DNA of 64,000 bases from Octopus vulgaris (lineage: Eukaryota). Positions within the stretch are counted from its first letter, which is position 1; each line of letters opens with the position of its first letter. A program made the translations under genes and the position numbers. This document shows positions 2,722-64,000 of this stretch, piece after piece. The DNA lies in the NCBI GenBank assembly GCA_951406725.2, contig OX597823.1, positions 62,868,001 to 62,932,000 on the forward strand, read 5' to 3'. The notes under the pieces were generated by a model. The model did no database searches, was not told the origin of the DNA, and worked only from the letters and a program-made list of their open reading frames with translations.

Positions 2722-2818
2722 CCTCCTTCTTCCCTTCCTTCCTGAGCATCCAATAATACTATACTTGTTCCACGTCCTCGCGTTGTTGTATTTTCTCTTG
2801 GTGTTTTCATGTTTGGAT

Positions 2819-2871
<53 letters not shown>

Positions 2872-16100: not shown

Positions 16101-18563
16101 AGAAGCAGGAACAAGTCAATTGCTCCCAGGCTCTTTTGGCAATGTGCCAAGAAAACAAGGAGGACTTTTTTGGCAGACTTATCACATAGCATGAAACATG
16201 GGTCCATCACTATGATTCTGAGACTGAAGTCTAGTTGAAGCAATGGAAGCATAACTCACCACCTCTAAAGAAACCTCATGTCCAATCCTCAGCAGGCAAG
16301 GTGATGCTTACAGTCTTTTGGGACCAGTGCAGAGTAGTGATGATGGATTTTCTGGCAGAGGGCACCACAATTAATGGGGCATATTATGCATCCCTACTGC
16401 AGAAATTGCGGGACACCACCAAAGTAGAGAGGTGTAACATACTGACCAAAGTAGTTTGCATCGAAGACAACTCCTTAGTTTGCAATGCAGATGTTGCTCA
16501 GATGAATGCATATTCCTGTGGCTATGAAACCCTTCCTCACCCACTTACTCTCCCGACCTTGCATCATCTGACTTCCTCCTCTTTCCAACCATGAAGTCCT
16601 TTTTGAAGGGGAAGCACTTTTCAGATGATGATGAACTTATTTCTGAGGTAAAGTCTTGGCTACAGAATCAACCTACTGACTTCTACAGACAGGGTCTTCA
16701 CAGATGCATAAAGGGATGGGAGAAGTGTGTCACCATTAGTGGTGGCTATGTAGGGAAGGACTAATACTTATGTCAAGTTTCATTTATTCCAGTCCTTGGG
16801 AAGTGGGTAAAGGGAAATTTCTAATGAACACCCCTTGTATGCACTCTTAGAATTTAATCTTAATACTGTTTTGTTAAAGTAGGTGTGTGTAATGTCATTA
16901 CTTTAACATTCACAAGCATCAGGGATAGGTCTCTCCATTTGGAGAATGCTGCCCTCCTTTCTCCTTCCCACCAATCTCAGGGATCTTGTAAAGGATTATG
17001 GGGATTGCTCAGTCATCATGGTCATGATCAGTGGAGGCATATGGCTTATTGGTTAAGGTGTTGGACTCATGATTGTAAGACTGTGTGTTTGATTCCTGGA
17101 CCAGGCAATGTGTTGTGTTCTTGAGCAAAACATTTCATTTCGCATTGCTCCAGTCCACTCAGCTGGCAAAAATGAATAATCCTTGTGCAAGTCTCTTCTG
17201 CTGTAACCTCAGACTGACTTAAAACTTGTGATTGAATTTGATAGGTGGAAGTTGTTATCATCATGTGTGTGTCAGTGCTTGTGCCTCCTAAAAAGAGAGG
17301 CTATTCATGCTGATCATGTTTTACTTCTTTGACCTGTTCTATGTTCAAACCATCCAGATCCAGCCTATCACACCTACTCTATAATGTAGCTTCAACATTT
17401 TGATGATGTGATGATCATCAAAATTTTGAAGCTACAAAATAACGCATGATAATTAACAACAATGTGAATGTGAAAACCTTACATTTAGCAGAATAATCTG
17501 AATGCTAAAGGGTTGAAGAAGTAAAAGGAATACGCTACTTATGTCTTATCTCTCTTTCTCTGTCTCTCTTATAGTCTCTCTGTCTGTTTTCCGTTTGTCT
17601 GTCTCTCCTTTTTTCTTTCTTAGTCTTCTCTTCGTTTGATATTTCACTTACTGTGTGTATTCTGGGCCTTTCTTTCATATCTGTGTTTCTCCCACTTCTT
17701 ATATTTTTTACTAGGAGCACGCATCAGTTGGCGAGGAACAAGAATACTCCTATGATCACACGCAAGAAATTGTGGCCCCACTGGAAGGAATGGATCAAGG
17801 AGCTTCACCTGGGGTCAATTTGCCACCAGAACTAGCCAACTTGATGGCCTCTCTCCAGCCACAGATTCAACCACCACCACAACAGGAAAACACTGCAATG
17901 ATGGATCATACTCCAAGTCCTGTAGTGGCTAATGTCCAGAATTTGCTCTTCTCTTTGATGGGAAACTCGGGTAATGATTATGGCAAACAGGATGAAATGA
18001 CCGAGAAGTTGAAGCAAATTTTGGAACCTCTGAAAAATCAACTTCCTGGTTTGTAAAATATTTTATGGTGTTTCTGTATGTGATGATGTGTTTGTTGTTG
18101 TTTAATATGGCATAGCTGTGTGGTTAAGAAGGTTGCTTAAAAAAAAAAAATCAGGTGATTCTGACTTAGTTCAATTTCATTGTATGGCCCCTTAGGCAAA
18201 CGTTTTCTATCCCTAAATTAGGATTGAAAAATGGCATTTGGTAGCTGGAAATCTCGTTCTGTGTGTGTGTGTTTGTGTGTTTGTTTGTTTGTTTATATAA
18301 ATATATATCAGAGGCAAATATGCATGTAAACAAACTAAATGTAACAGATTGGGTTTGATATACAATATATATATATATATATGTGTGTATGTGTGTACAC
18401 ATATAAACAAAGAAAGCAAAGACAGAAGATTTTCAGGCAATGAATATTTAAGTATAGATATATAGATATTTATATATTAATAGTTCAAACTTATTTAGAG
18501 TACAAATGACAGAGAAAAGTAAAGGGGAGGAGGTTAGGTGTTAGAAGTTCAACAGCTATTTAT

Positions 18564-19629: not shown

Positions 19630-22600
19630 AAAAGAGAACTGTTTATAAACTTATGTTCTCTTTGAAATGTAAAGGTTTCTTTTAGGGGAAATGAAAAATT
19701 GGAAATCCAAACATGTTCTATACTAAGCAGTAGAGTGCTTTCCATCTCTGACAGACTTTACACGGGTCATAGGGAAACTGTGGCCTGCAAGACGTTTTGA
19801 ATGGCTTGCCTAAACGAAAAATTACCTGGAATTGTTTTAATAATATGGACTGCCTGATGATGAGCTGTGTTTAGTGTATCCCACTTTTTAGAAAAAGGGT
19901 TTCCCATGCCTGCTTTACACCTCTCAGTCTCTATTACTGTTTGTCATTACGCCTAGGTGCTTCTACTCCAGTTTCAGTTTTCCTTATTTTCTGTTTGTCA
20001 CCATCTTTCATAAAGTGTTTGTCACATTTTCAGTACATTTCTGATATGATTTTTTCCTTCCATTTTCCAGGTTTAGGTGGTGGCCCAATGCAGCCTCCTC
20101 AAGACTATCCCCCAGAGTATATAGATAACTGGCATGACGGTTCACTAGACTGTCCACCACCAGGTGCTAGATGTCCTAATCCGGGTCTTCAAGGAATGCC
20201 TGGTCCACCCGGCCCATTTGGCCCTTGTCCTCCAGGGCCTGGTCTAGGGCCTGGACCTGGAGGACATGGTCCTGGACTAGGCCCTGGTCCTGGTCCTGGA
20301 CCAGGCCCTGGGTTTGGACCTGGACCTGGTTTTGGACCAGGACCTGGTCATGGACCGGGACCAGGATGTGGACCTGGCCCAGGACATGGACATGGGCCGG
20401 GCCCAGGATGTGGTCCAGGTCCTGGTCCAGGACCCGGACCATGTCAAGACCAAGGCCCTGGTCATATGAGAGGAAATCGCTCAGGTCGTAACTATCCACC
20501 TCGTAATAATAGATCAATGCCTCAGGGAATGCGAGGACGACAAGGACGTAATGGAAGAGGTACGTACTTATAATTTTTTTAGTGAATTATTATTATTATT
20601 ATTATCAAGGCTGTGAGTTGGCAGAGTTGTTGGCATGCTGGACAAAATACTTGGCAGCATTTCATCTGTCTTTAGTTTCTGAGTTCAAATTCCGTTGAGG
20701 TCAGCTTTGCCTTGCATCTTTTCAGGGTCAATAAATTAAGTAGCAGTAAAATTACTGGGTTTGATGTAATCAACTAGTCCGCTCCCACCAAATTTCAGGC
20801 CTTGTGCCTTTAGTAGAAAGAATTATTATTATTAGCATAATGTAGTGAGCTGGCAGAAGCGTTAACTCAGACAAAATGCTCAGTGGCATTCCATCTGCCT
20901 TTATGTTCTGAATTCACAATCCATTGTGGTTGATTTTGCCTTACATCTTTTTGGGGTTAATAAAATGAATATGTTAAGTAACTGGCTTGTTCCCTCCAAA
21001 AATTTCAGGCCTTGTGCCTATAGCAGAAAGGACTACTACTGCTGCTGCTACAATCATTATTATGTTAAGTTGAAATATCTCTGAGGTCATGTTTGTCTTT
21101 TGTCTTTCTGTGGGTAACAGAATAAAGTTCTTGTGTAGCATGTCCAGGCATGGCTGTGTGGTTAAGAAGCTTGCTTAATGACTACATGGTTCTAGGTTTG
21201 ATCTCACTCTATGTCACCATAGGCAAGTGTCTTCTATCAAAGCCTTGGTTTATGGCTCATAACTTGGGAGTTGAATTTAGTGCACAGAAACAGTGGAGAA
21301 TTTCCTACTTTGCACTAACCCATCTGTCAAAGTTAGATAAGTATGCAGCACAAAGCTCTCACTTCTGTACCTTTACAGCTAAATAAAAGGATATATTTGC
21401 TGTTGAATGTTGAGTTCTGTCTCCTATGTTTGTACCACGAAGCCTATATTTCATCATCATTATTATCATTTAACATCTGTTTTCCATGATTGCATGGATT
21501 GGATGGCTTGACAAGAACTGGCATGGCCAGTGGCCACACCAGGTTCCCATACTCTGTTTTGGCTTAGTTTCTATAGCTTGATGCCCTTCCTAATAACACA
21601 CATGCACACATACATACATACACACACGCACGCACAAAAACACATTTATTTATTTGTGTGTGTGTGACAACATAACTGGTAACATTTGTTGAAATTTCCT
21701 AACTCTGCTAGAGAATTACATTTTGGGTAACTGTGTCTGTGAAATATTCAGTCAATTGCCAGTTCAAGGGTCTTTACCTTTTGACAAACAGATTTAAAAA
21801 ATAATTTTTTGTAACTAAACACTTTCAAACTTCGGACACTAGTAGGTGTCATATAAAACGTGTTTTACTCTTAGTATTTTTGAGAAAAACTTATATTTAC
21901 AAAGTAATTTCATGTTAAAGTAGGCCTATTTCGGTAATTTCAACCAATGAATGACGTGTATTCAGCTGAATAAAATTACTGCCATTGTTTGTCAACAAGA
22001 ACCTCCGGCAGTGTATTTTTCGTTATATGCTAACATAAGATTTTCTCAAAAATGCTAAGAGTAAAACATGTTTTATATGACACATTCTACTAGTGTCCGA
22101 AATACAAAAAAATATTTTTAAAATCTGTACGTCAAAAGGTTAAGATCCCCCAGTTCAGATGTTGGTTATTCAGTGGATTAAATGACCGAAACCTCATCAT
22201 TGAATGACAGTGATCCACTGTGTAGTCTTCAGAGAAATTTGTCACGTATATATGTGTGTTTTTTCTTGTCTCCTTGCCTTGACATCGATTACTAATTGTA
22301 ATCAAACTTTACCATCATACATGTGATATCATTTGTTTGCAATCGTCAATGAAAACTTGTCTGGCCATCATGCTGTTTGTGTTTGAAGGACCACAGGGAG
22401 ATAAAAAAAAAAGCCCAGTTGTGGATAATAAGTTTTGTAGGTCTATTATCTTTATGTTCTGTTAATAAAAGTATCTGGATCCAAATAAACTATATTGCTA
22501 ACAGTTTTGTTTCAACCAAATTGCTTTCTTTAAAAGTACAAATAAATCAAAAATAATAACAGCTTTTTTTCTTTTCTTCTGCTTTTTTTTTTACAGATTT

Positions 22601-32064: not shown

Positions 32065-32803
32065 TGTGGACAACAACATAAGCTGGGCCACTCATATAAA
32101 CACCAAAGTTGACATGGCCCGCAGAATGTGTTCCTGGATTCTCAGAACTTTCCAGTCGAGAGATATCCACACCATTATCCTTCTCTTCTCCACTTTTGCC
32201 CGACCCCACCTTGAATACTGTTGTCCACTGTGGTCTCCCCACACAATACAAAGTATCATAAAAGTTGAAGCACCTCAAAGAGCAATCACAAAAAAGATAG
32301 ATGGCATGACAGGCCTCGACTATTGGGGTCGACTAGAAAAGCTAAAACTTTATTCTCTCCAACGTCGTCGTGAGCGCTACATCATCTGCATGATGTGGAA
32401 AATATTCCATCAGCATTGCCCAAATGATGTTGGCATCACCTTTAAGGTACATCCAAGGCTTGGGCACCGTGCCATCCGCCCAAAACAAAAATCGCACTCT
32501 CATCTCATAACAACAATACGGCACAATTATTTCACCTCAATTGGCCCCGCTCTCTTTAACATTACACCAAAACACATTAAAACAGAAACTGACCCTATAG
32601 GGTTCAAGAAGTCTTTGGACAGATTCCTTCAAGAAATCCCGGATAAACGCCCTACACCCGGATATGTCTCTGTAAACAATAACTCTCTACTTGAGTGGGC
32701 CATAGTGCCCAAATTCTGACTTGAAAGACTTCACCAGGTGGTGCTATTAAGTTAGACATGGCCTGGGCCAATAATGGCCGAAACCTATCAAAGTATCAAA
32801 GTA
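32065..32803 (+). mobile_element. 5'-truncated CR1-like LINE with an uninterrupted 217-aa RT C-terminus
   Basis: RPHLEYC..LWSP, LYSLQRRRERY, GPALFN; (atcaaagt)n tail. Confidence 0.9.
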
Positions 32804-35031: not shown

Positions 35032-35306
35032 ATTATATGCTTATATATACATATTTATTTATGCGCCCTTTTCAAGCCTAGCCAGGCTCATGGACCCGGT
35101 TTCCCGGTTTCTGTGGCGTATGTGTTCTTTTTGTGCTTTACAATGTAACACACTCACCGGTAAAATTTCCACTTATTTCATATTTTTATTCTCTTAAAAT
35201 TCTCGTTGCGTCTTGCAACCTTTTCAATATGCGTCTTGCAGCCTTTTCAATAGTCTTGACTATTGAAAAGGTTGCAAGACGCATATTGAAAAGGTTGCAA
35301 GATGCA

Positions 35307-35342
35307 TATTGAAAAGGTTGCAAGACGCAACGAAAATTTTAG
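35307..35342 (+). ncRNA. Minimal hammerhead-like motif (U3-A8 core)
   Basis: ta-TTGAAAA-g-gttgc[aagac]gcaac-GAAA-ATT-T-ta. Helix I is only 2-3 bp. A mirror copy lies on the minus strand at about 35190-35228. Confidence 0.45.
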
Positions 35343-38461: not shown

Positions 38462-38820
38462 AGGCGGCGAGCTGGACGAATTATTAGCACGCCGGGCGAA
38501 ATACTTAGCGGTATTTCGCATGCCGCTACGTTCTGAGTTCAAATTTCGAGGTCGATTAAATAAGTACTAGTTAGGCCCTGGGGTCGATATAATCGACTTA
38601 ATCCGTTTGTCTGTCCTTGTTTGTCCCGTCTGTGTTCAGTCCCTTGTGGGTAGTAAAGGAATAGGTATTTCGTCTGTTTTTACGTTCTGAGTTCAAATTC
38701 CGCCGAGGTCGACTTTGCCTTTCATCCTTTCGGGGTCGATAAATTGCGTACTGGGGTCGATCTAATCGACTGGCCCCGTCCCCCAAAATTTCGGGCCTTG
38801 TGCCTAGAGTAGAAAAGAGT
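38462..38820 (+). mobile_element. SINE family A. Other copies at about 132-330, 20605-21030, 41345-41525, 42120-42345(-), 50263-50450
   Basis: Recurrent ggcgagctggcagaa...gagttcaaattccgccgaggtcgactttgcc. Confidence 0.85.
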
Positions 38821-38823
38821 ATA

Positions 38824-39100: not shown

Positions 39101-39672
39101 AATCCGGCGAAAAGGGCGGATGAGAGACGAGATGGAGGTTTAATTTGAGGGAATTTTGGCTGATAATTTCCGCAGGTCGTCCGACAATGTACAGGCTACT
39201 TCACAGAAGTGGAAGTGGATAGAAGAATCGGGAGAAAGGAGAGTGGAAGAGATAAGCGAATGAACACAGGATAAAGATCCTCCCCGAGTCATATAGACTC
39301 ATAGACCCATAAGGACCGGTTTCCTGGTTTCTGTGGCGTATAAATTCCCTCGTGGGCGGGACGCCGAACAGTCGCAAGATTACTCATTTTTGCCAGCTGA
39401 GTGGACAGGAGCAACGTGAAACACAGTGTTTAGCTCAAGAATACAACGCATCTCCTGGACCAGAAATCGAAACTACAATCTTACGACTACAAGCCCGATA
39501 CTCTAACCACTAAGCCACATGCCTTCACTAATAAACAGAAGTTAAGGCAATTTTCTGACTATGCAAGATCTTAAGGCGGTTTTTATTTATTCTTTATAAT
39601 TTCAATTGCAGCGTGGAAGCCATTTAAGAAACACACAAAAACCGTTAGATTCACTTCAACATTTAAATTTAA

Positions 39673-39723
39673 TTTGCCAAAATATTTTCGTCGCTTTGAG
39701 ACCGCGACCTGTTCACTGACAAA
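39673..39723 (-). ncRNA. Variant hammerhead (G3-C8 core) in the left arm of the palindrome
   Basis: Mirror copy with a 7-bp helix I (tttgtca/tggcaaa). Confidence 0.6.
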
Positions 39724-39747
39724 ACTTCGTGCTGCATCTCGAAGTTG

Positions 39748-39794
39748 TGTCAGTGAACAGGTCGCGGTCTCAAAGCGACGAAAATATTTTGGCA
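39748..39794 (+). ncRNA. Variant hammerhead (G3-C8 core) in the right arm of a palindrome
   Basis: tgtca-GTGAACA-g-gtcgc[ggtctcaaa]gcgac-GAAA-ATATT-T-tggca. Confidence 0.6.
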
Positions 39795-41789
39795 AATTAA
39801 ATTTAAATGTTGAAGTGAATCTAACGGTTTTTGTGTGTTTCTTAAATGGCTTATAAACACCTTCCACGCTGCGATTGTTTTCGTTCCAGAACACGATCTC
39901 AGATCAGGTCACTTGCTATGCAAGTACATCTCCATTATAATTTCTTTTTGCAGAAAAGTAGATCTTCCGAGTTGTCAAAACGTTTTCCTGGAGCGGCACC
40001 GTGTGCTCTTGATCACTGCATCATCGCATATACCACTTGGCTTCATAGAAATGACTCTTCAACAAAAGCACTGTTAAGGATTTCTCAGCTACTCCCAAAA
40101 CTGCATATTCATTACGATTTATAAAACGACTAACTTCACCAAACGAAATTGCAAATGCTCATTTAATGAAACGCATACGTAAATGTAAATTTCAAATGCA
40201 ATACCCACATAAACACACACACACACACACGCACATACACGCATACATACATACGTATGTATGTATGTATGTATGTATGTATGTATGTATGTATGTATGT
40301 ATGTACTACGAAACCCTTTTCAAACGTCGCTAAAATCAACAGATTCAAAGTTTCCGCAATATAATCAGATACTTCCTTCTCTTCGTACATTTCGGAAATG
40401 GAATAAAAAGCAAAGAAAAATTATAAAAAGAACAAAAACCAGAAAAAAAGGAACATCATCATCTACACTAAAACGCACTTAGGTAATAAATGGCGGACCA
40501 AATCACGTACAAACCAACCACACCATATACTATTTGCATTTAACCCTTCGTAGGCCGGCAGGTTTGGAATTACATGAGTAAGTGCGTGATAGAGAACAAG
40601 AAATTTAGTACCTTATAAGTGTATATTTGTAATTATTAGCGTTTAATGGAGGGAAATTAAAATATAATTTATTAACTGAAAAAAAAAAAAAAACCTTCAT
40701 TGAAAGAAATCAACATTTTTAATAGTTTTATAAACTATACATATAGCACTAAATATAAAATAAAAAAAAATTATTTAGTATATCGGGTCATACCAGTACA
40801 TTAACGAAGAAAATTGATTTATAGTTCATCAGAATATTTGAAAAAAGAACAGAAAAAAATAATTTCACAGAAGGCCAATGGGGTCCAGTTAGACCCCAAT
40901 GACCATATTTTATGCTATAACATTCATATGATTGGAAATTTTTTATTCAAAATTTATAAGTGCATACTTAAACTATTGAGAGGCTGTGTGGTAAGTAGCT
41001 TGCTTACCAACCACATAGTTCCGGGTTCAGTCCCACTGCGTGGCACCTTGGGCAAGTGTCTTCTAAGGCCTATTACAGGAAAAGAAAAAGTTCTTGTTAT
41101 GCTTGTACAACTGAAATTTATGAAATTCAGTGTATTAAGAAACCAATAATGAACCCAGCATTTTCTAATTGCTGGCATGAAACTTATAAAACATCTAAAT
41201 ACTATAAGCATATAATATATCCCGATAAATATAACAAAAACCTTTCTTTTGTGTGTCCTCCAAACTGCCTTACATACGTGCCTAACTTTCGATTTTATAG
41301 ATCTATATATTCTAGAGTAAAACCAAATATTATTCCCGCAAAAATTTGAGCTGGTAGAAACGTTAGCACGCCGGGCAAAATTAGCGGTTTTTCGTCCGTC
41401 TTTCATGTTCCCTGAGTTCAAATTCCACCGAGGTCGACTTTGCCTTTCATCCTTTCCGGGTCGGTAAAATAAGTACTAGTTAGACACTGGTAACGATGTA
41501 ATCGACTCATCCCCACCTCCCTCAAACTGCCCCTGTGGAAAATAATAAAAATTACTAGCTGGACCCGTGAAAAATTCACGGAAAACATAAAAAATGTAAG
41601 CATCTATAAACAGTGTACTGGTACCATGAGAAATGTTTGCATATTATGACCGCCTGTCTTTACTTTCTCAGTTCAAATTCTTCCGAGAGCGACTTCACCT
41701 TTTGTCCTTTTGGAGTCGATAAATTATGTACCAGTTGTGTACTGGAGTCGATCTAATCAATTACAATTATATTTATTAGTATCGCAACC

Positions 41790-42120
41790 ATTATTTTAAC
41801 TAGTATAGTTACTATACATGGTAAATTATGTTTCTTAAATCGTTTAAACATATATTTTGTCCAGTGTTGACATCTCATAGCCTGTTCCTTTCTAGTGTTT
41901 ATAACAGTAAATTTAGAAGTGAAAATTAGGTACATTACTTCCTCACAAAGGTCATGTCTATTATCACCTATTCTATAAGGGTTTGGCTTTCTAATTATTT
42001 CCAAGCAATCGAGTATACTTTCGCTGGTAGTATTCATTTTGTTCCAATTTGCAAACGAACTTAAATGAGTGGCAAATCTCTGCTTAATATAACACGAGTT
42101 AGCTCCTATATATATTTCTT
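41790..42120 (-). mobile_element. Penelope-like GIY-YIG C-terminal fragment, distinct family
   Basis: IYIG...IKQRFATHLSSF...PNPY...DLCEE...INTRKE...RCQH, matching the Penelope C-terminal pattern. Confidence 0.7.
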
Positions 42121-42964
42121 TACTACCCACAGGGGGCTAAACACAGAGGGGACAAACAAGAACAGACAAACGGATTAAGTCGATTACATCGACTCCAGTG
42201 CGTAACTGGTACTAAATTTATCGACCCCGAAAGGATGAAAGGCAAAGTCGACCTCGGCGGAATATGAACTCGGAACGTAACGACAGACGAAATACGGCTA
42301 CGCATTTCGCCCGGCGTGCTAACGTTTCTGCCAGCTCGCCGCCTTCCTATATAGAAATGCAATGGAGATCGTGCTAGTGTTGTCGTTCATTGGTAGTGCT
42401 GTTATTCTAGTTTGCTGCTTATAGGGATTGGAAAACCGTTAAGCCACAGAACAAAACGTCTGGTGCCTATTTGTTGGAGCACATTATGCTCTGAGATCAA
42501 ACCCCTCTCAGGTCAACTTCGCCTTTTATCCCTCTGGAATCGATAAAATCAAGTTCCAGTGAAGCACTGAAGTCGATTTAATCGACCAACTTCCTCACCA
42601 CAAGTTTCAGGTTTTATGCCTATATTAGAAACTTTTGTTAATGGCTGTTATTATTGTTTCTCGACTCGTGAAAGATCTTAAGGACATCAATAGCAATCTT
42701 ACAAACTCAGCTATTTTCTCTCATGCAGGTCTCTGAAGTGGTTTATGGCTCACAATTTTGACTTTTGACGTCAGTTACTCACCAAATGTGTCGTTGTTAA
42801 AACTCTTCAACCCTATTTACAGCCACCCGACAATCCCTGCCTCCTCTCAGTGTTCAGAAGAAGTGTCTTGTCCGAAACACTACAACTCTTTCCCTTTCCC
42901 TCCCCCTCTGTCTCTCTTCCATCTTAAAACACGAACTTATTGTGAAATATCTTGTTAAACCTAC

Positions 42965-45378: not shown

Positions 45379-46429
45379 TTATTTGGGAAAAAATTACATT
45401 TGTGCCTATATAGGGAACGGCCTCAATGGTGATAAAGTCAATACAGATGTATATAGGAAAAGTTTATGTCCCAAAATGGAAATATATGTGTATATACATA
45501 CGCACACAACTCTGAAAAATTTCAGTAACCAGGTCGCAGCTGGTACGGCGTAAAATTTTGACACCAAATAATAATTAAATGAAGTTAACAGTCTTTGTGT
45601 TTTTGAATGGCTAATGTGGGTCTTCTATGCTGTAATTGTTTTAGTTTCAACACAGTCTCAGATGAAATCAATAACCAGACAATAATGTACATCTCCAATA
45701 TATATTTCCGATGAAGTGCTATTCTCGAAACGTCACTCATATTTTTCTGACTAATACTTTCACTGAGCGTCAGTCTAATATATTCACTGTGTAAGTCCAA
45801 TTGACTTTTGATCTTTCTTGTTTTTTAAATTTTTAATTTGCCTACACACGCACAAACACACACACACACACGCACACACACACACATTTACCCACACAGT
45901 GAGAACTGTAATAGTTTTAGTGGTGATGATATTGGTAGGATGTTAGATAATCGAGGTGATGGTGGCGGTGGTAATAGTTTTGTTTTGGAAATGGTAAAGA
46001 GCTTTTGGTTAACAATTTATTAATTTTTGTGAATTGAAATTTATGAAAAAATATGGTATGATATAACACTTGCATCTTAGTGCAAGTAATTATTGTTGAG
46101 CAATTGTCGTCGCTGCTACCACTATTACGATGACAACCCACAACAAACTAACAATAACTGTCACAAACAACGAATAAATGCTATCGCCACCGCCAGCATT
46201 AGCTTCTGATTTGAGTTACTTCTCTTAGCGAGGGGCAAAATGTAGTTAGGAAAGTACTATTGTATTAATATACAGATATTCACCAAGAAATATTTGAAAT
46301 AGCAAATTGATTTTCCTGACTACAGACAGATATATCTCTATCTGTCTCTCTTCTTTGTTTGTTTCTTTCTTTTGTCCTTTTATTCGTTTCAGTCGTGTGG
46401 CTGCGGTCATGCTGGAGCACCACCGTGAT

Positions 46430-47900
46430 TTTGTACTTATATACACCATTCTTCTTTGGTTGATTATTTCAGGATGGTAGGATTTCCGCTCTTCCCTTGG
46501 TTGTCTGCCCAATTCGTGTATGAGAGAGCTTGATACTGCTGCCCTCATCCGTACCTCATGCCGGGCCATTGGCTCATCCGGTGTTGTTGAGAGGAGAATG
46601 TCCAGTTCCTTTTTGAAGACATTCACATCCACATTGTGTAGATTTCTTAATTTTTTTGTAGGGCATTGAAAATCTATGGGTCTTTGAACCCTAAGCTATT
46701 GGTCTTTTGGTACAATACAACGGCATCCAGTTCGGGTATTTGTATAAAACTCAATGCTGAAATTAGCTACTAGCCCTTTTAGAATTTTCCATATGTAGAT
46801 TATTACTTATCTGTTGCGTCTTAGCTTCGGGAGCAAAGTCGTAGTTTTCTCAGCTTCTCCCTGCAGCTCATGTACTGCACTGTTACAATCTTTTTAGTGT
46901 AGTGACGTTGGACCACTTCAAGCTCCGCGGTTAGTTCGGCATTATGTGGTGGCCATAGCTGAGAGTAGTAGTCCAGGCGGCTGAGAACAAAAGTCCTCCA
47001 CAGAGTCAACATGACTTCTTGGTTCCTTGTCTTGAAAGACCTTGGAATCCAGCCTTTCGGTTGTCTGCACTTTATTGCCATCTTGATAATGTGCATATGA
47101 AATGATGCATCGTTACACATACTGATCCCCATATCTCTCATTGTTGGTGACTCTGGGATTACGATGCCTTCGGGTCCTGTATACGCAGGCGGCAGTGCAT
47201 TTGTAAGCATATAGCGTACTGCTTGAAATGTTCCAGCATTAATCTGCATGTTGATTTCTTCAGCCCACTTGTATATTGCGTTTAGGTTCTGCTGCAAGCT
47301 TGCGACATTGTCTGGTTTCGATATTGCCTGTGATAATTATGTATCATCGACGTAGCCAGTGACAGTGGCTGTCCGAGTGACCATAGGCATGTCTAAGAGA
47401 GCTATTATAAATAGTAATGGCCCCAAGACAGTTCCTTGGGGGACGCCACTCAGAATTTATGTTTCCTCAGAGAGGAAGTCATGCAACAACTCCCCCAATT
47501 ACTAGCTGTGCCAAAGTCTCGCAGCTTGAGACATATTATGCCATGACCTACCTTATCAAAGGCCTTTACGAGGTCAAGATATATTACACTGACGTCTGAA
47601 TGGTCAAACATCTGTTTCAAAACTCAGTCATAGTGCCGTAAGAGCTGTGTATCGTGCAGTAAATAATTTTCTTCTAGGAGCATTATCAATTTCTTTCTGA
47701 TGATTCGTTCCATGACTTTACTGACATGTGAAGTTGGAGAGATTGGCCTGCAGTTTATAGGCTTTGCTCTACTTCCACCTTTGTGGATAGGGCATATAAT
47801 ATCTTCTCTTTTAGCTTTTTAGGAAGCTTACCACTTGCAAGGAAATTCTGGAAAAGCATCTCAAATGGTTTCACATAGCAGAGAGCAATTCGAGGGATAT
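46430..47900 (-). mobile_element. Degraded CR1-like LINE ORF2 (reverse transcriptase)
   Basis: KAFDKVGHG, GVPQGTVLGPLLF, YVDD, SRLDYYSQLW, VQRHYTKKI. Confidence 0.85.
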
Positions 47901-49084: not shown

Positions 49085-49890
49085 TTGGCACAAGGCCAGC
49101 ATTTTGGGGGAAGGGTATAAGTCGATTACATTAACCCCGGGGTTCAACTGGCACTTATTTTATCGACCCAGAAAGGATGAACGGCAAATCTGAACTCGGC
49201 GGAATTTGGACGCAGAACGTAAAGACGGACGAAATGCCACTAAGAATTTTGCCCGGCGTGGTGACGATTCTGCCAGCTAGCCGCCTTCATTCATAATAAT
49301 AATCCTTTCTACAATAGGCACAAGGCCTGAAATTTTTTTTGGGGGAGGGGACTAATCGATTACATCGACCCAGTGTTTCACTGGTGCTTAATTTATCGAC
49401 CCTCGAAAGGATGAAAGGTAAAGTCGCCCTCGGCGGAATTTGAACTCAGAACGTAAAGTCGGACGAAATGCTGCTCAGCATTTCGCCCGGCGTGCTAATG
49501 TTTCTTATTTCTTTATTGCCCACAAAGGGCTAAACATAGAGGGAACAAACAAGGACAGACAAACGGATTAAGTCGATTACATCGACCCCTGTGCGTAACT
49601 GGTACTTAATTTATTGACCCCGAAAGGATGAAAGGCAAAGTCGACCTCGGCGGAATTTGAACTCAGAATATAGCAGTAGACGAAATACCTATTTCTTTAC
49701 TACCCACAAGGGGCTAAACACAGAGAGGACAAACAAGGACAGACAAACGGATCAAGTCGATTATATCGACCCCAGTGCGTAACTGGTACTTATTTAATCG
49801 ACCCCGAAAGGGTGAAAGACAAAGTCGACCTTGGCTGAATTTGAACTCAGAACGTAGCGGCGTGCTAACGTTTCTGCCAGCTCGCCGCCA
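49085..49890 (-). mobile_element. Head-to-tail cluster of SINE family A units
   Basis: Four to five partial units in the same orientation. Confidence 0.8.
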
Positions 49891-50713
49891 TACCTGGCAC
49901 ATTAAAAATGTCAACCTTTCTTAAGTTATTTGGTAAGACAATCGAATATCTTCTCTTTCCTCTTCCTTTTAACTTTCCCGGTTATCACAAAGAGCTCAGG
50001 ATTACCTTTTACCTTTTGATGGCCTTTGCTTGTCTGAGGACTTCTATGTTTGTCACTCTGTCTGCATAGGATATATTCGGCATTCGTCTAGCGAACCACA
50101 TCCCTGCAGTATTCTAAGTGTTTATTTGTTAATGTTCCTTGTTACACAACCATTTACCTTTATATAGGTCAACGTTTTCGATTGCTATGAGATTGAAACT
50201 ATGCTGTACTATAAAAAACAAAACAAAAACAAAAACAATAAAAAGGTGGGGATACATTAAAGTGGCGAGCTGGCAGGATCATTAGCATGCTGGGAAAATG
50301 CTTAGCGTTCTGATTTCAAAATACACCGAGATCGACTTTACCTTTCGTCCTTTCCGGGTAGATAAAATAAGTACCAGTTGTGTACTGGAGTCAATCTGAT
50401 CCACTTACCCCTTCTCCTGAACTTGTTAGCCTTGTGCCAAAATTTGAAACCAATATTTTGGATTGTTACTCAATGACGTAGAAGTAGGTTTTCAACGTCA
50501 CAAACTCTGACATAATCCTGCAGTGTGTGCCTGTGACGTGAACTTAAATTCACAAATTTACGGTTGTATTCCGTCCAGTCGGGTCAGATGGTGCCATATC
50601 CAGTTGTGACATTTGGAAAGTTAAAGTGACAACCCAAAGTGCCACCTTAAAAGAAAGTTCGTTTTCTTATTTTTTTTAGTATCCTTACTTATAAGTTCAA
50701 ATCCTTTAGGAAA

Positions 50714-62919: not shown

Positions 62920-63539
62920 TACGCACGCACTGAATACTAAATGCTTACTAAATATACAACAGCTTCCGGATCTTCGGATCTCATCAAAAATTGACGACTA
63001 AAAGTTCCAGTTGCTCAGTCAACCGAATTAAATCTAAGACCTTCTTCAGTCGCGGTGGCTATGGTTGGCTGCACATTGAAAAATCTCCGTGATGTAGATC
63101 TGGGTAAGATTTATTTTTTAGCGGAAGACTCGCAGCTGCCCCCCGGTCTTCAGAGAAGTACCGAGGCAAAGGTTTGATACTGCTTGGCACCCGTATCGTT
63201 GCAAGTGTCGCTATCAGAATGCAAAACTGCCGGAGCAGATATTGCAAGAGCAGTCTGTATGATCGCCTAATAATTCTGCTAATGCCCTGCCCTGGATTGA
63301 TATTTTATTTTAACGACTCCGAAAGGTTCAAAGGCAAAGTTGTCGTCTGTAGAATTTGAAAGCAGGACACATGGAGTCGGAACAAACAATGCGAGACATT
63401 CTGTCTCAGTCACCTGAAATACTTAACTACCTACAACTGAGAACTTCCCTGTATTGAGCGAGCCTGTTGCTAAGCATTTGCGATATAAAGTATTAAAAAA
63501 AACCCTCTGTAGTATTCCACTGATATTTATACACATTAA

Positions 63540-64000
63540 GGCTGCGAGCTGGCAGAAACATTAAGCACGCCGGGCGAAATGCTTAGTAGTACTTCGTCTG
63601 TCTTCACGTTCTGAGTTCAAATTCCGCCGAGGTCGACTTTGCCTTTCATCTTTTCGGGGTCGATAAATTAAGTACCAGTTACGTACTGGGGTCGATGTCA
63701 TCGACTTAATCCATTTGTGTGTCTTTGTTTGTCCCTTCTATGTTTAGCTCCTTATGGGCAATAAAGAAATAAGAATTTCGTCTGTCTTAACGGTCTGAGT
63801 TCAAATTCCGCTGAGATCGACTTTGCCTTTCTTCCTTTTAAATGCGGCGAGCTGGCAGAATCGTTAGCACGCTGGGCGAAATGCTTAGAGGTATTTCGTC
63901 TGCCGCTACGTTCTGAGTTCAAATTCCGCCGAGGTCGACTTTGCCTTTCATCTTTTCGGGGTCGATTAAATAAGTACCAGTTACGCACTGGGGTCGATAT
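63540..64000 (+). mobile_element. Head-to-tail cluster of SINE family A units, runs off the window
   Basis: Three gagttcaaattccgc units. Confidence 0.8.

Follow-up and report, generated by a model that had tools for sequence, protein, structure and literature searches.

The window, that is, the whole 64-kb stretch of DNA that was analysed, contains a palindrome whose symmetry axis falls at 39734|39735. A repeat search of the window delineated two inverted arms of 118 nt each (39617-39734 and 39735-39852), separated by a spacer of 0 nt, together with a pair of outer arms (39603-39626 and 39854-39877). Base-by-base comparison of the inner 118-nt arms disclosed three mismatches (39732/39737, 39730/39739 and 39722/39747), and the identity of the two palindrome arms at this locus amounts to about 97-98.4%. 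The outer 17 nt of the arms could be paired at 15 of 17 positions only after allowing an 11-nt shift, indicating that the left arm lacks 11 nt after position 39620. An earlier note on this DNA had described near-identical arms of which the left one is 11 bp short, and these figures confirm it. The 10-nt central loop proposed there holds only approximately, as 6 of the 10 central bases are still self-complementary. Likewise, the palindrome placed at 39603-39877 is real, but its extent was not correctly drawn, the inserted unit being 39604-39934 and ending in a 57-nt tail.

The complete inserted unit spans 331 nt (plus strand) and is made up, in order, of an inverted monomer devoid of a tail (the left arm, 39604-39734, minus strand, bearing the 11-nt deletion; nhmmer model positions 1-143, E = 4.6e-36), a direct monomer reaching as far as the proximal end point (the right arm, 39735-39877, plus strand, whose end lies 88 nt 3' of the predicted hammerhead cut site), and the one-sided 57-nt tail (39878-39934, plus strand). 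A perfect 10-bp target-site duplication, TTATAATTTC, brackets this unit on the left (39594-39603) and on the right (39935-39944), the 10-mer being present only twice in the window. Both copies of TTATAATTTC abut exactly the limits of family homology with two copies from Logan contigs (L001 and L005), which begins with AATTGC and finishes with ...CATCTCCA. Given the duplication that surrounds it, the 331-nt unit is self-contained. The tail holds two small hairpins, GATCTCAGATC and CTTGCTATGCAAG, terminates in GTACATCTCCA, and is kept in L001, L005 and a solitary copy at 45.5 kb of the window; no left arm has one. Together with the family copies presented below, these observations establish the palindrome, its target-site duplication, its family membership and its monomer/dimer structure: the 331-bp unit is a recently inserted retroposon in which a ~197-nt element occurs twice, head to head, and its build is that of the ends of Penelope-like retrotransposons.

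The repeat family and the head-to-head dimer

The family sample comprised 7 arms from 4 loci, mostly decayed copies, namely the present palindrome, L001, L005 and the 45.5-kb monomer. The Logan copies were reached through a full HMMER scan with the translated palindrome ORF (P0001 and P0002, leading to L001-L005); a word-indexed search with the same translated ORF returned no family copies, and a profile search performed after the HMMER scan yielded no additional ones. In a metagenome scan, the helix-II 20-mer gave 0 matches, and a degenerate 20-base AT-rich pattern gave, among the matches listed, chance matches only and no family member.

L001 and L005 are two older palindromic copies that display the head-to-head structure in independent Logan assemblies, from at least 5 runs, with arms ~74-78% identical. 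In L001 the duplication is of 6 bp (TATGAC), with an identical register on the left. The solitary copy is an older, full-length monomer (45508-45697, plus strand; blastn 67% identity over 192 nt; nhmmer model positions 2-197 of 197, E = 9e-40) that sits in a TA/CA microsatellite. Its 3' end, TGTACATCTCCA, is the family 3' end, common to the four loci, while its 5' end falls at the position of the palindrome centre. A putative left arm upstream of this copy was rejected (alignment score of 33 versus a null of 27.6 +/- 4.6).

Some amplification procedures and long-read library protocols are known to generate spurious near-perfect palindromes, and a fold-back chimera arising in the library or the assembly would produce a structure of this kind. 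At this locus, however, a perfect target-site duplication flanks an asymmetric unit, and the head-to-head structure recurs at the two Logan loci, where the arms have diverged to an extent that is not what an artefact would produce. Such an origin is hardly credible. A DNA-transposon MITE, for instance a Mutator-like one (long TIRs, target-site duplications of 9-10 bp), could also account for the extended, nearly identical inverted repeats and the duplication of 10 bp, with the palindrome as the two TIRs. Yet, since the duplication encloses the one-sided 57-nt tail, the termini of the unit (AATTGCAG... and ...ACATCTCCA) are not inverted repeats; moreover, the solitary single-arm copy, which shares the 3' end, extends no further than the palindrome centre, and the duplication varies in length between copies (10 versus 6 bp), L001 carrying in addition 7 extra nt at one end. 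We consider a MITE very improbable.

Returning to the unit as a retroposon, the same dimer junction is found at three loci, from which it seems that the dimer itself propagated. The window copy and L001 have in common both the centre and a left/right asymmetry (CAGCAC versus CATCTC), which suggests that a palindromic master was copied whole; this is not the textbook route of a Penelope-like element (PLE).

The hammerhead-like motif of the arms

Each arm carries a minimal hammerhead-ribozyme (min-HHR) motif in which the C3-G8 core pair is swapped to G3-C8. In the right arm (39746-39796, plus strand; located by a descriptor match and by the fold of the isolated segment), the core from G3 to A9 reads GTGAACA (39753-39759) and is followed by an extra G (39760), by helix II, GTCGC/GCGAC (39761-39765/39775-39779), with loop 2 at 39766-39774, by GAAA for G12-A15.1 (39780-39783), by the palindromic AUAU (39784-39787), and by U16.1 (39788), U17 (39789) and U1.1 (39790), so that the predicted cut site is 39789|39790. 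The strands of helix I lie at 39746-39752 and 39790-39796. According to the descriptor search, the right-arm helix is of 5 bp and its left-arm counterpart of 7 bp, the left-arm motif occupying 39673-39723 on the minus strand (core 39716-39710; predicted cut 39680|39679). Base by base, the motif is as the earlier note had read it (GUGAACA, extra G, helix II, GAAA, the palindrome, the UUU site and helix I).

The invariant hammerhead core is matched at 11 of 13 positions, the exceptions being 3 and 8, where G and C replace C and G; a G3-C8 pair capable of Watson-Crick pairing is present in both arms at this locus as well as in the consensus of the 7 arms. The min-HHRs of PLEs, a comparison that the earlier note had not drawn, are characterised by one nucleotide left unpaired between A9 and G10.1, conservation of the G10.1-C11.1 pair, palindromic positions 15.2-16.2 and a short helix I (PMC4209133). 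Both arms have the type I topology and harbor the unpaired nucleotide, G10.1-C11.1 and the palindromic 15.2-16.2. Helix III (AAUAUU) has no loop and, as such, could form only between two molecules.

A min-HHR descriptor that left N3 and N8 free, and that was written after the candidate had been seen, matched twice in the 64 kb, both times in the palindrome arms, and not once in 400 simulated windows. Over 212 Mb of composition-matched simulated sequence it matched 7 times, which corresponds to 0.0042 per window for any N3/N8. With G-C at N3/N8, the chance rate is ~0.0002 per window (G-C making up 19 of 406 partial matches), while a rough extrapolation from the simulation gives ~0.1 per window if any two core mismatches are allowed. 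In 0.876 Mb of unrelated contigs there was a single match, a canonical CUGAUGA min-HHR (L062) of identical architecture (1 extra nt, 5-bp helix II, 4-nt palindrome and 7-bp helix I). The fit of the motif to the descriptor and its rarity are both demonstrated by these searches. Two partial-descriptor matches of the U3-A8 kind (35286 and 35309) were discarded; they fall in a 23-nt repeat and are devoid of the GAAA-UH-helix I part.

Rfam gave no match in the whole window at the gathering cut-off and, at E <= 10, no hammerhead match in 39400-40100 and none of any kind in the 69-nt arm segment alone. Standard searches do overlook the motif, as had been anticipated, and the absence of a match is uninformative, since the canonical-core control L062 was missed as well. 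Sub-threshold Rfam matches to miRNA precursors in 39400-40100 were rejected, being produced by the hairpin itself.

Within the family, the majority consensus (7 arms, 4 loci) retains the whole motif, including G3 and C8, so that the refuting condition named in the earlier note, a consensus without the core or the helices, did not arise. The idea that G3 and C8 are fixed was not upheld, G3 being found in 6/7 arms and C8 in 4/7. In older copies some invariant bases are gone (C8 in 3/7 arms, G12 in 3/7, and G5 in the 45.5-kb copy, whose core has decayed to GTAACCA...TAAA), and the youngest copy, that of the present locus, keeps the motif intact. Helix covariation was not detected in the 7 arms (74.7% of cells paired versus 75.0% in shuffles; score 0.150 versus 0.159), and hammerhead positions showed no excess conservation (34/37 identical versus 122/142 elsewhere; P = 0.42).

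These data bear on an alternative in which the element is a hairpin-forming, SINE-like non-autonomous retroposon, its likeness to a hammerhead being a coincidence of local inverted repeats (TGTCA...TGACA, GTCGC...GCGAC) and of A/T-rich strings (GAAA, ATATTTT) falling in hammerhead order. Consistent with such a coincidence, two of the 13 invariant core bases are off consensus and helix III is lacking, neither an Rfam match, nor covariation, nor excess conservation of the hammerhead positions was obtained, G5, C8 and G12 are freely lost in old copies, no PLE ORF lies nearby, and the candidate was presumably picked among many windows, with several kinds of deviation acceptable. On the other hand, the chance rates for any N3/N8 and for G-C are those given above, the two deviating bases are exactly the ones that are Watson-Crick paired in the active structure, several independent min-HHR-specific traits are present, and the cut-to-end distance and the one-sided tail fit PLE biochemistry; dead copies would, moreover, be expected to decay neutrally even with a real ribozyme. 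We regard this alternative as possible, albeit rather doubtful. Judged from its sequence, the motif probably represents a known class of ribozyme with a core variant that is new; we infer that it descends from a hammerhead and that its G3-C8 core could be catalytically competent. That it represents a competent hammerhead kept by a still-active PLE lineage appears unlikely.

Folding predictions were obtained for the isolated motif and for the entire palindrome. The minimum free energy (MFE) structure of an isolated left-arm 60-mer is the fold with helix I, helix II and an open core (-13.9 kcal/mol), and a domain-swapped dimer reaches -23.0 kcal/mol versus -24.6 kcal/mol for two monomers. A wobble pair between G3 and U17 is possible and occurs in the predicted MFE; such pairing may trap an inactive fold or disfavour the active one. 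G17 reportedly gave a G3-C8 variant higher activity than the natural C17 did (data not shown there; PMC3884650), which hints that G3 can mispair with N17. The segment 39590-39890 has a fold energy of -214.5 kcal/mol (z = -33). The earlier suggestion that the long hairpin competes with ribozyme folding is supported by the computed energies (-214.5 versus -12.3 kcal/mol), and a read-through RNA at this locus would form a near-perfect duplex of ~130 bp, which the earlier note had put forward as a candidate substrate for ADAR or Dicer. No second sense copy was found in cis at this locus, and the ribozyme would almost certainly be inert here.

A probable insertion in the style of Penelope-like elements

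Overall, we favour, as reasonably probable, a young non-autonomous short retroposon, inserted in the manner of a PLE, each arm of which carries the family's min-HHR-type hammerhead with a G3-C8 core. The monomer (39735-39934, ~197 nt) comprises a ~18-nt leader, the 45-nt type I motif, 88 nt to the proximal end and the 57-nt tail. Two such monomers stand head to head, joined at 39734|39735 through their 5' ends, with the 3' ends facing outward and a tail on one of them only. Such a layout has been described for PLE insertions, in which a GIY-YIG endonuclease/reverse transcriptase (RT) nicks both target strands and primes reverse transcription on both; the two alternative internal start sites lie downstream of the hammerhead, at a distance of ~90 nt and more. 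The motif, having no helix III of its own, is most likely the family's PLE min-HHR and would be active only where two sense copies form a dimer.

Mobilisation by a PLE is the presumed step in this scheme. The predicted cut site lies 88 nt from the proximal element end (39877 - 39789) and 145 nt from the distal one. PAc, a PLE of the green anole, cleaves and extends both strands in vitro, and its two start sites define the tail (PMC11167929). Counted from the beginning of its ORF, RT starts at 111-118 nt and the HHR cut falls at 26 nt, which places the RT start 85-92 nt 3' of the cut (PMC11167929). The 88 nt observed here fall within this range, although a single reference element makes for a weak comparison.

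No RT/GIY-YIG ORF was found between or beside the arms, nor within 10 kb, and Pfam was negative on the neighbouring ORFs. A GIY-YIG-like ORF (41753-42130, minus strand) was considered as a possible PLE remnant, but Pfam was negative on it even at E = 10. The ATG at 39846 is conserved, and no record was found for the ORF 39846-40124. A search with a LINE RT tail matched marine invertebrates (ctenophores and a stomatopod) at ~50% identity and the assembly GCA_024449705.1 at 67%. The view of the arms as an inverted pseudo-LTR pair is an analogy only, as no RT/GIY-YIG ORF accompanies them and the target-site duplication makes the 331-nt unit self-contained. The earlier proposal of a natural G3-C8 hammerhead variant in an inverted pair was partly supported: the anatomy of the motif and its family consensus were sustained, and its fixation and the pseudo-LTR status were not.

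Should the motif cleave, it would be, as far as the literature searched goes, the first natural G3-C8 hammerhead, and it would provide in-vivo support for positions 3 and 8 mattering as a pair, not as specific bases. Descriptor- and Rfam-based censuses would then under-count the ribozymes of retroelements, and the 197-nt monomer with its head-to-head dimer would offer a compact natural system for the role of hammerheads in PLEs. If it were, further, a competent hammerhead in an active lineage, CUGANGA searches would be systematically blind to one class of ribozymes in PLEs, core-swapped hammerheads might occur in some PLE clades or genomes for which canonical ones have been reported absent, and the head-to-head dimer would propagate itself as a hairpin retroposon and supply dsRNA pathways as well. 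Should the motif not cleave, the locus would still offer a clean case of a short non-autonomous element with a double-ended insertion of PLE style, and would count as ordinary repeat biology.

Comparison with known hammerheads and retroelements

As in known PLE insertions (PMC8557442, PMC11167929), the inverted copy directly adjoins the direct one, the extension is present at one end only, the hammerhead is situated close to the 3' end, the targets are AT-rich or microsatellite, and the target-site duplications are of variable length. In contrast, the tail measures 57 nt versus the 30-40 nt reported for PLEs, the copies (~130-197 nt; full length versus solitary monomer) are not randomly 5'-truncated, the dimer junction recurs in three loci, and the unit has no ORF.

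The motif resembles the min-HHRs of PLEs (Cervera & de la Pena 2014, PMC4209133) in its helix II of at least 5 bp and its helix I of 4-7 bp, in having no helix III hairpin of its own, the palindromic 15.2-16.2 pairing only with a second copy, and in occurring as solitary motifs or opposite-strand pairs; the published motif pairs lie on opposite strands, 100-700 bp apart (PMC4209133). It differs from them in that no RT/EN ORF is linked to this family, in that its N17 is a U, able to wobble-pair with G3, and in its G3-C8 core, C3-G8 and U3-A8 being the only natural pairs in the literature searched, where 3-8 covariation occurs as U3-A8 (PMC3088659, PMC4209133). Published PLE min-HHRs are poor cleavers even with canonical cores (PMC4209133).

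With the metazoan non-LTR retrozymes and the Sm-alpha-type elements of Schistosoma (PMC7229834), the present element shares a non-autonomous, AT-rich nature and a length within 170-400 nt, a type I hammerhead whose palindromic helix III is weak, and target-site duplications >4 bp; in a preprint (10.64898/2026.07.22.740005), elements of the retrozyme/Sm-alpha type are proposed to be PLE derivatives. Unlike retrozymes, which are direct tandem repeats giving circular RNAs after double cleavage, the copies are inverted, no direct tandem copies being found in the window or at the Logan loci, and the predicted cleavage site lies away from the ends of the element. Finally, engineered G3-C8 hammerheads have been reported, as relayed by later papers, to be active in vitro (Przybilski & Hammann 2007; Nelson & Uhlenbeck 2008; via PMC3884650 and PMC3088659); whereas these are laboratory mutants of extended hammerheads with tertiary contacts, their core Watson-Crick pair is exchanged at both bases, just as in the two arms described here.

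The palindromic unit and its family

The site holds a genuine palindrome that is far from random: an inverted-repeat search returned arms 39617-39734 and 39735-39852, with 97% complementarity and a spacer of 0 nt, and RNA folding of 39590-39890 yielded -214.5 kcal/mol (z = -33). Compared base by base, the inner arms show only 3 mismatches, two lying at most 5 nt from the axis between 39734 and 39735 and one at 39722/39747, and 15/17 of the outer nucleotides are paired once an 11-nt deletion of the left arm is allowed for. The earlier note had described 39603-39877 as two near-identical arms, the left one lacking 11 bp, each with a hammerhead-like string and an ATTAAA after helix I; the arm comparison bears out the first point, and the string was found as placed, identical in both arms. 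The ATTAAA, a variant polyadenylation hexamer, is likewise present in each arm straight after helix I (39796-39801, mirror 39668-39673), inside a conserved ATTTAAAT-rich block.

The ORF that crosses the palindrome was translated and searched against 1.8 billion protein representatives; the family came to light through two matching ORFs in Logan assemblies of runs SRR118693xx, both reading through palindromic copies. The contigs concerned represent two loci (L001-L004 and L005, respectively), and alignment of both with the window delimited the homology to 39604-39934, so that it takes in the palindrome and, on the right alone, a further 57 nt. This 331-nt unit is flanked by TTATAATTTC at 39594-39603 and 39935-39944, a target-site duplication whose 10-mer has no other occurrence in the 64 kb. 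In L001 the duplication is 6 bp (TATGAC), its left copy being in the register of the window copy and its right copy following 7 extra nt. Arm identity in L001 has fallen to about 74-78%; an artefact would not show such divergence, and an artefactual source of the palindrome was therefore excluded.

An arm-profile search of the window disclosed a fourth family copy, a solitary monomer at 45508-45697 covering model positions 2-197 of 197. Its 3' end, TGTACATCTCCA, is identical to that of the unit, the counterpart of its 5' end is the palindrome centre, and the sequence upstream of it holds no inverted partner. The basic element is therefore a monomer of ~197 nt whose ends are defined, and the unit is its head-to-head dimer with the 57-nt tail on one copy only. 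The unit probably arose by retroposition and not as a TIR transposon, since its termini are not inverted, the copies have a precise 3' end in common, and their target-site duplications vary in length. Since the palindrome centre is precisely where the solitary monomer stops, each dimer could have formed anew from two full-length cDNAs, one per opposite target strand. That the palindromic dimer itself may instead have become the source element is favoured by the agreement of the window copy and L001 both in the asymmetry of the central 6 nt (CAGCAC in the inverted arm, CATCTC or CAT in the direct arm) and in the side that bears the tail.

The hammerhead-like motif

In both arms the motif reads GUGAACA, an extra G, GUCGC and GCGAC around a 9-nt loop, GAAA, AUAU, two U residues, the predicted cut and UGGCAAA, which base-pairs back to the motif's 5' side. 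We used a descriptor modelled on the published minimal hammerhead of Penelope-like elements (PLEs), with N3 and N8 unconstrained. It required a helix I of 4 bp or more, N3-UGA-N-N8-A, at most one extra nt, a helix II of 4 bp or more with G10.1-C11.1 as its closing pair, GAAA, a palindrome of 0-6 nt and U-H. Its only 2 matches on both strands of the window were the two arms; there were none in 400 simulated windows, 7 in 212 Mb of simulated sequence (0.0042 per window, with G/C in about 5% of partial matches) and 1, with a canonical core, in 0.876 Mb of unrelated fetched contigs. Two partial "U3-A8" matches in 35220-35340, a stretch holding direct and inverted copies of a 23-nt unit (GCATATTGAAAAGGTTGCAAGAC), were rejected, the remainder of the hammerhead being absent.

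A chance positive control came from a metagenome contig (L062; JGI24700J35501_10923216) retrieved through an unrelated chance pattern match. It harbors at 2798-2845 (-) a canonical-core minimal hammerhead, CUGAUGA-U-GGCUC...GGGCC-GAAA-CAUG-UU-GUCUAUG, with exactly the architecture of the candidate. Rfam detected no hammerhead in the candidate, and none of its families detected this canonical motif at E <= 10; the minimal class is therefore outside Rfam coverage, and the negative result on the candidate is uninformative.

The whole motif, including G3 and C8, is kept in the consensus of seven arms from four loci. The expectation that the family keeps G3/C8 thus holds for the consensus but not for every old copy, C8 and G12 each being lost in 3 of the 7 arms and G5 in the 45.5-kb copy; as C11.1-G12 is a CpG, the G12 loss in L001 could be CpG decay. 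The seven arms showed no helix covariation (paired cells 74.7% vs 75.0% in shuffles), and between the young copy and the old-copy consensus, conservation at the hammerhead positions did not exceed that elsewhere in the element (p = 0.42). Because dead copies look the same, these results neither prove nor disprove function in a master element. The MFE structure of the isolated 60-mer comprises helix I and helix II with the core open; U17 can wobble-pair with G3, and the MFE extends helix I by that pair. This resembles the C3-G17 trap described in PMC3884650, which also states (data not shown there) that G17 gave a G3-C8 variant higher activity than the natural C17 did. A domain-swapped double hammerhead brings no energetic gain (-23.0 vs -24.6 kcal/mol for two monomers).

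A plus-strand transcript of the unit carries one antisense and one sense motif, perfectly pairing, and a second sense copy able to supply helix III is absent; ribozyme action at this locus is therefore very unlikely. Dicer or ADAR could plausibly act on the predicted duplex of ~130 bp.

Surrounding repeats and reading frames

The window is eukaryotic; its GC content is ~38%, and it contains long stretches of microsatellite as well as tRNA-like SINEs and the tails of LINE RTs. Repeat copies at 39378-39532 (-), 70 bp left of the unit, and 17027-17181 are 78% identical and have a tRNA-like head with A/B-box-like strings by eye; ARAGORN called no tRNA in them. A SINE-like short repeat of about 150-270 nt reaches a high copy number, the 64 kb holding no fewer than 10 copies with identities of 70-90% (38600-38822; near 174-261, 20659-21035, 41386-41758, 42113-42295, 49087-49856, 50306-50449 and 63309-63977). 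LINE RT C-terminal tails of the ...RPHLEYC..W.P... type lie at 32066-32719 (+) and 46821-47297 (-), and ctenophores and a mantis shrimp have homologues about 50% identical to them, with closer ones in GCA_024449705.1 (67%) and in a contig of a JGI metagenome (83%); Pfam was negative on both, since the RT domain proper is missing.

No RT/GIY-YIG ORF linked to the family was found within 10 kb of the unit. The ORF at 41753-42130 (-), 1.8 kb from the unit and with an upstream frame to ~42170, reads C-P-L-C ... Y-I-G-x-N ... R-F-A-T-H ... C-E-E and on visual inspection resembles the CCHH/GIY-YIG endonuclease of PLEs; Pfam gave no GIY-YIG match there even at E = 10. All copies have an ATG at one monomer position (AAATGG/AAATGT; in the window, 39846-39934 and 45604-45697), from which a frame free of stop codons extends to the 3' end of the element both in the young unit (MAYKHLPRCDCFRSRTRS..., the ORF running on to 40124) and in the 45.5-kb monomer (MANVGLLCCNCFSFNT...). 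The ORF of the anole element PAc begins within its hammerhead region, and the conserved ATG could be the start of a partner's ORF; the frame, of ~30 codons, could equally be due to chance.

Comparison with Penelope-like elements

Overall, the motif is probably a PLE-type minimal hammerhead, as predicted from sequence, with a natural G3-C8 swap, on a short, recently active head-to-head retroposon. The interpretation in the earlier note is partly supported: the descriptor results and the fit to PLEs speak for it, while the missing covariation and excess conservation and the core bases lost from old copies weaken the ribozyme claim. Its premise that compensatory 3-8 swaps are active in vitro agrees with Perreault et al. 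2011 (PMC3088659), who mention such activity of covarying variants as established earlier. PLE minimal hammerheads have an unpaired nucleotide between A9 and G10.1, a G10.1-C11.1 pair, a palindromic 15.2-16.2 segment and a short helix I, all of which the candidate shares; they also form opposite-strand motif pairs, as does the candidate, and show natural U3-A8 covariation (Cervera & de la Pena 2014, PMC4209133; U3-A8 also in PMC3088659), where the candidate has G3-C8; those published cleave poorly even with canonical cores (PMC4209133).

A PLE-type origin of the unit is favoured mainly on account of its agreement with PLE architecture, which no search had presupposed. PLE insertions are often directly abutted by a 5'-truncated copy in inverted orientation and carry a tail of 30-40 bp at just one end; their hammerheads lie close to the 3' ends, and microsatellites are preferred as targets (Craig et al. 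2021, PMC8557442). The unit's tail, also at one end only, is 57 nt, and the solitary monomer similarly lies within a TA/CA microsatellite. In PAc, studied in vitro in 2024, both target strands are cleaved and extended, and two adjacent internal RT start sites define the tail (PMC11167929). There, RT starts 111-118 nt and the hammerhead cuts 26 nt into the ORF, placing the RT start 85-92 nt 3' of the cut (PMC11167929); in agreement with this, the tail-less arm of the unit stops 88 nt past the predicted cut, while its counterpart with the tail extends another 57 nt.
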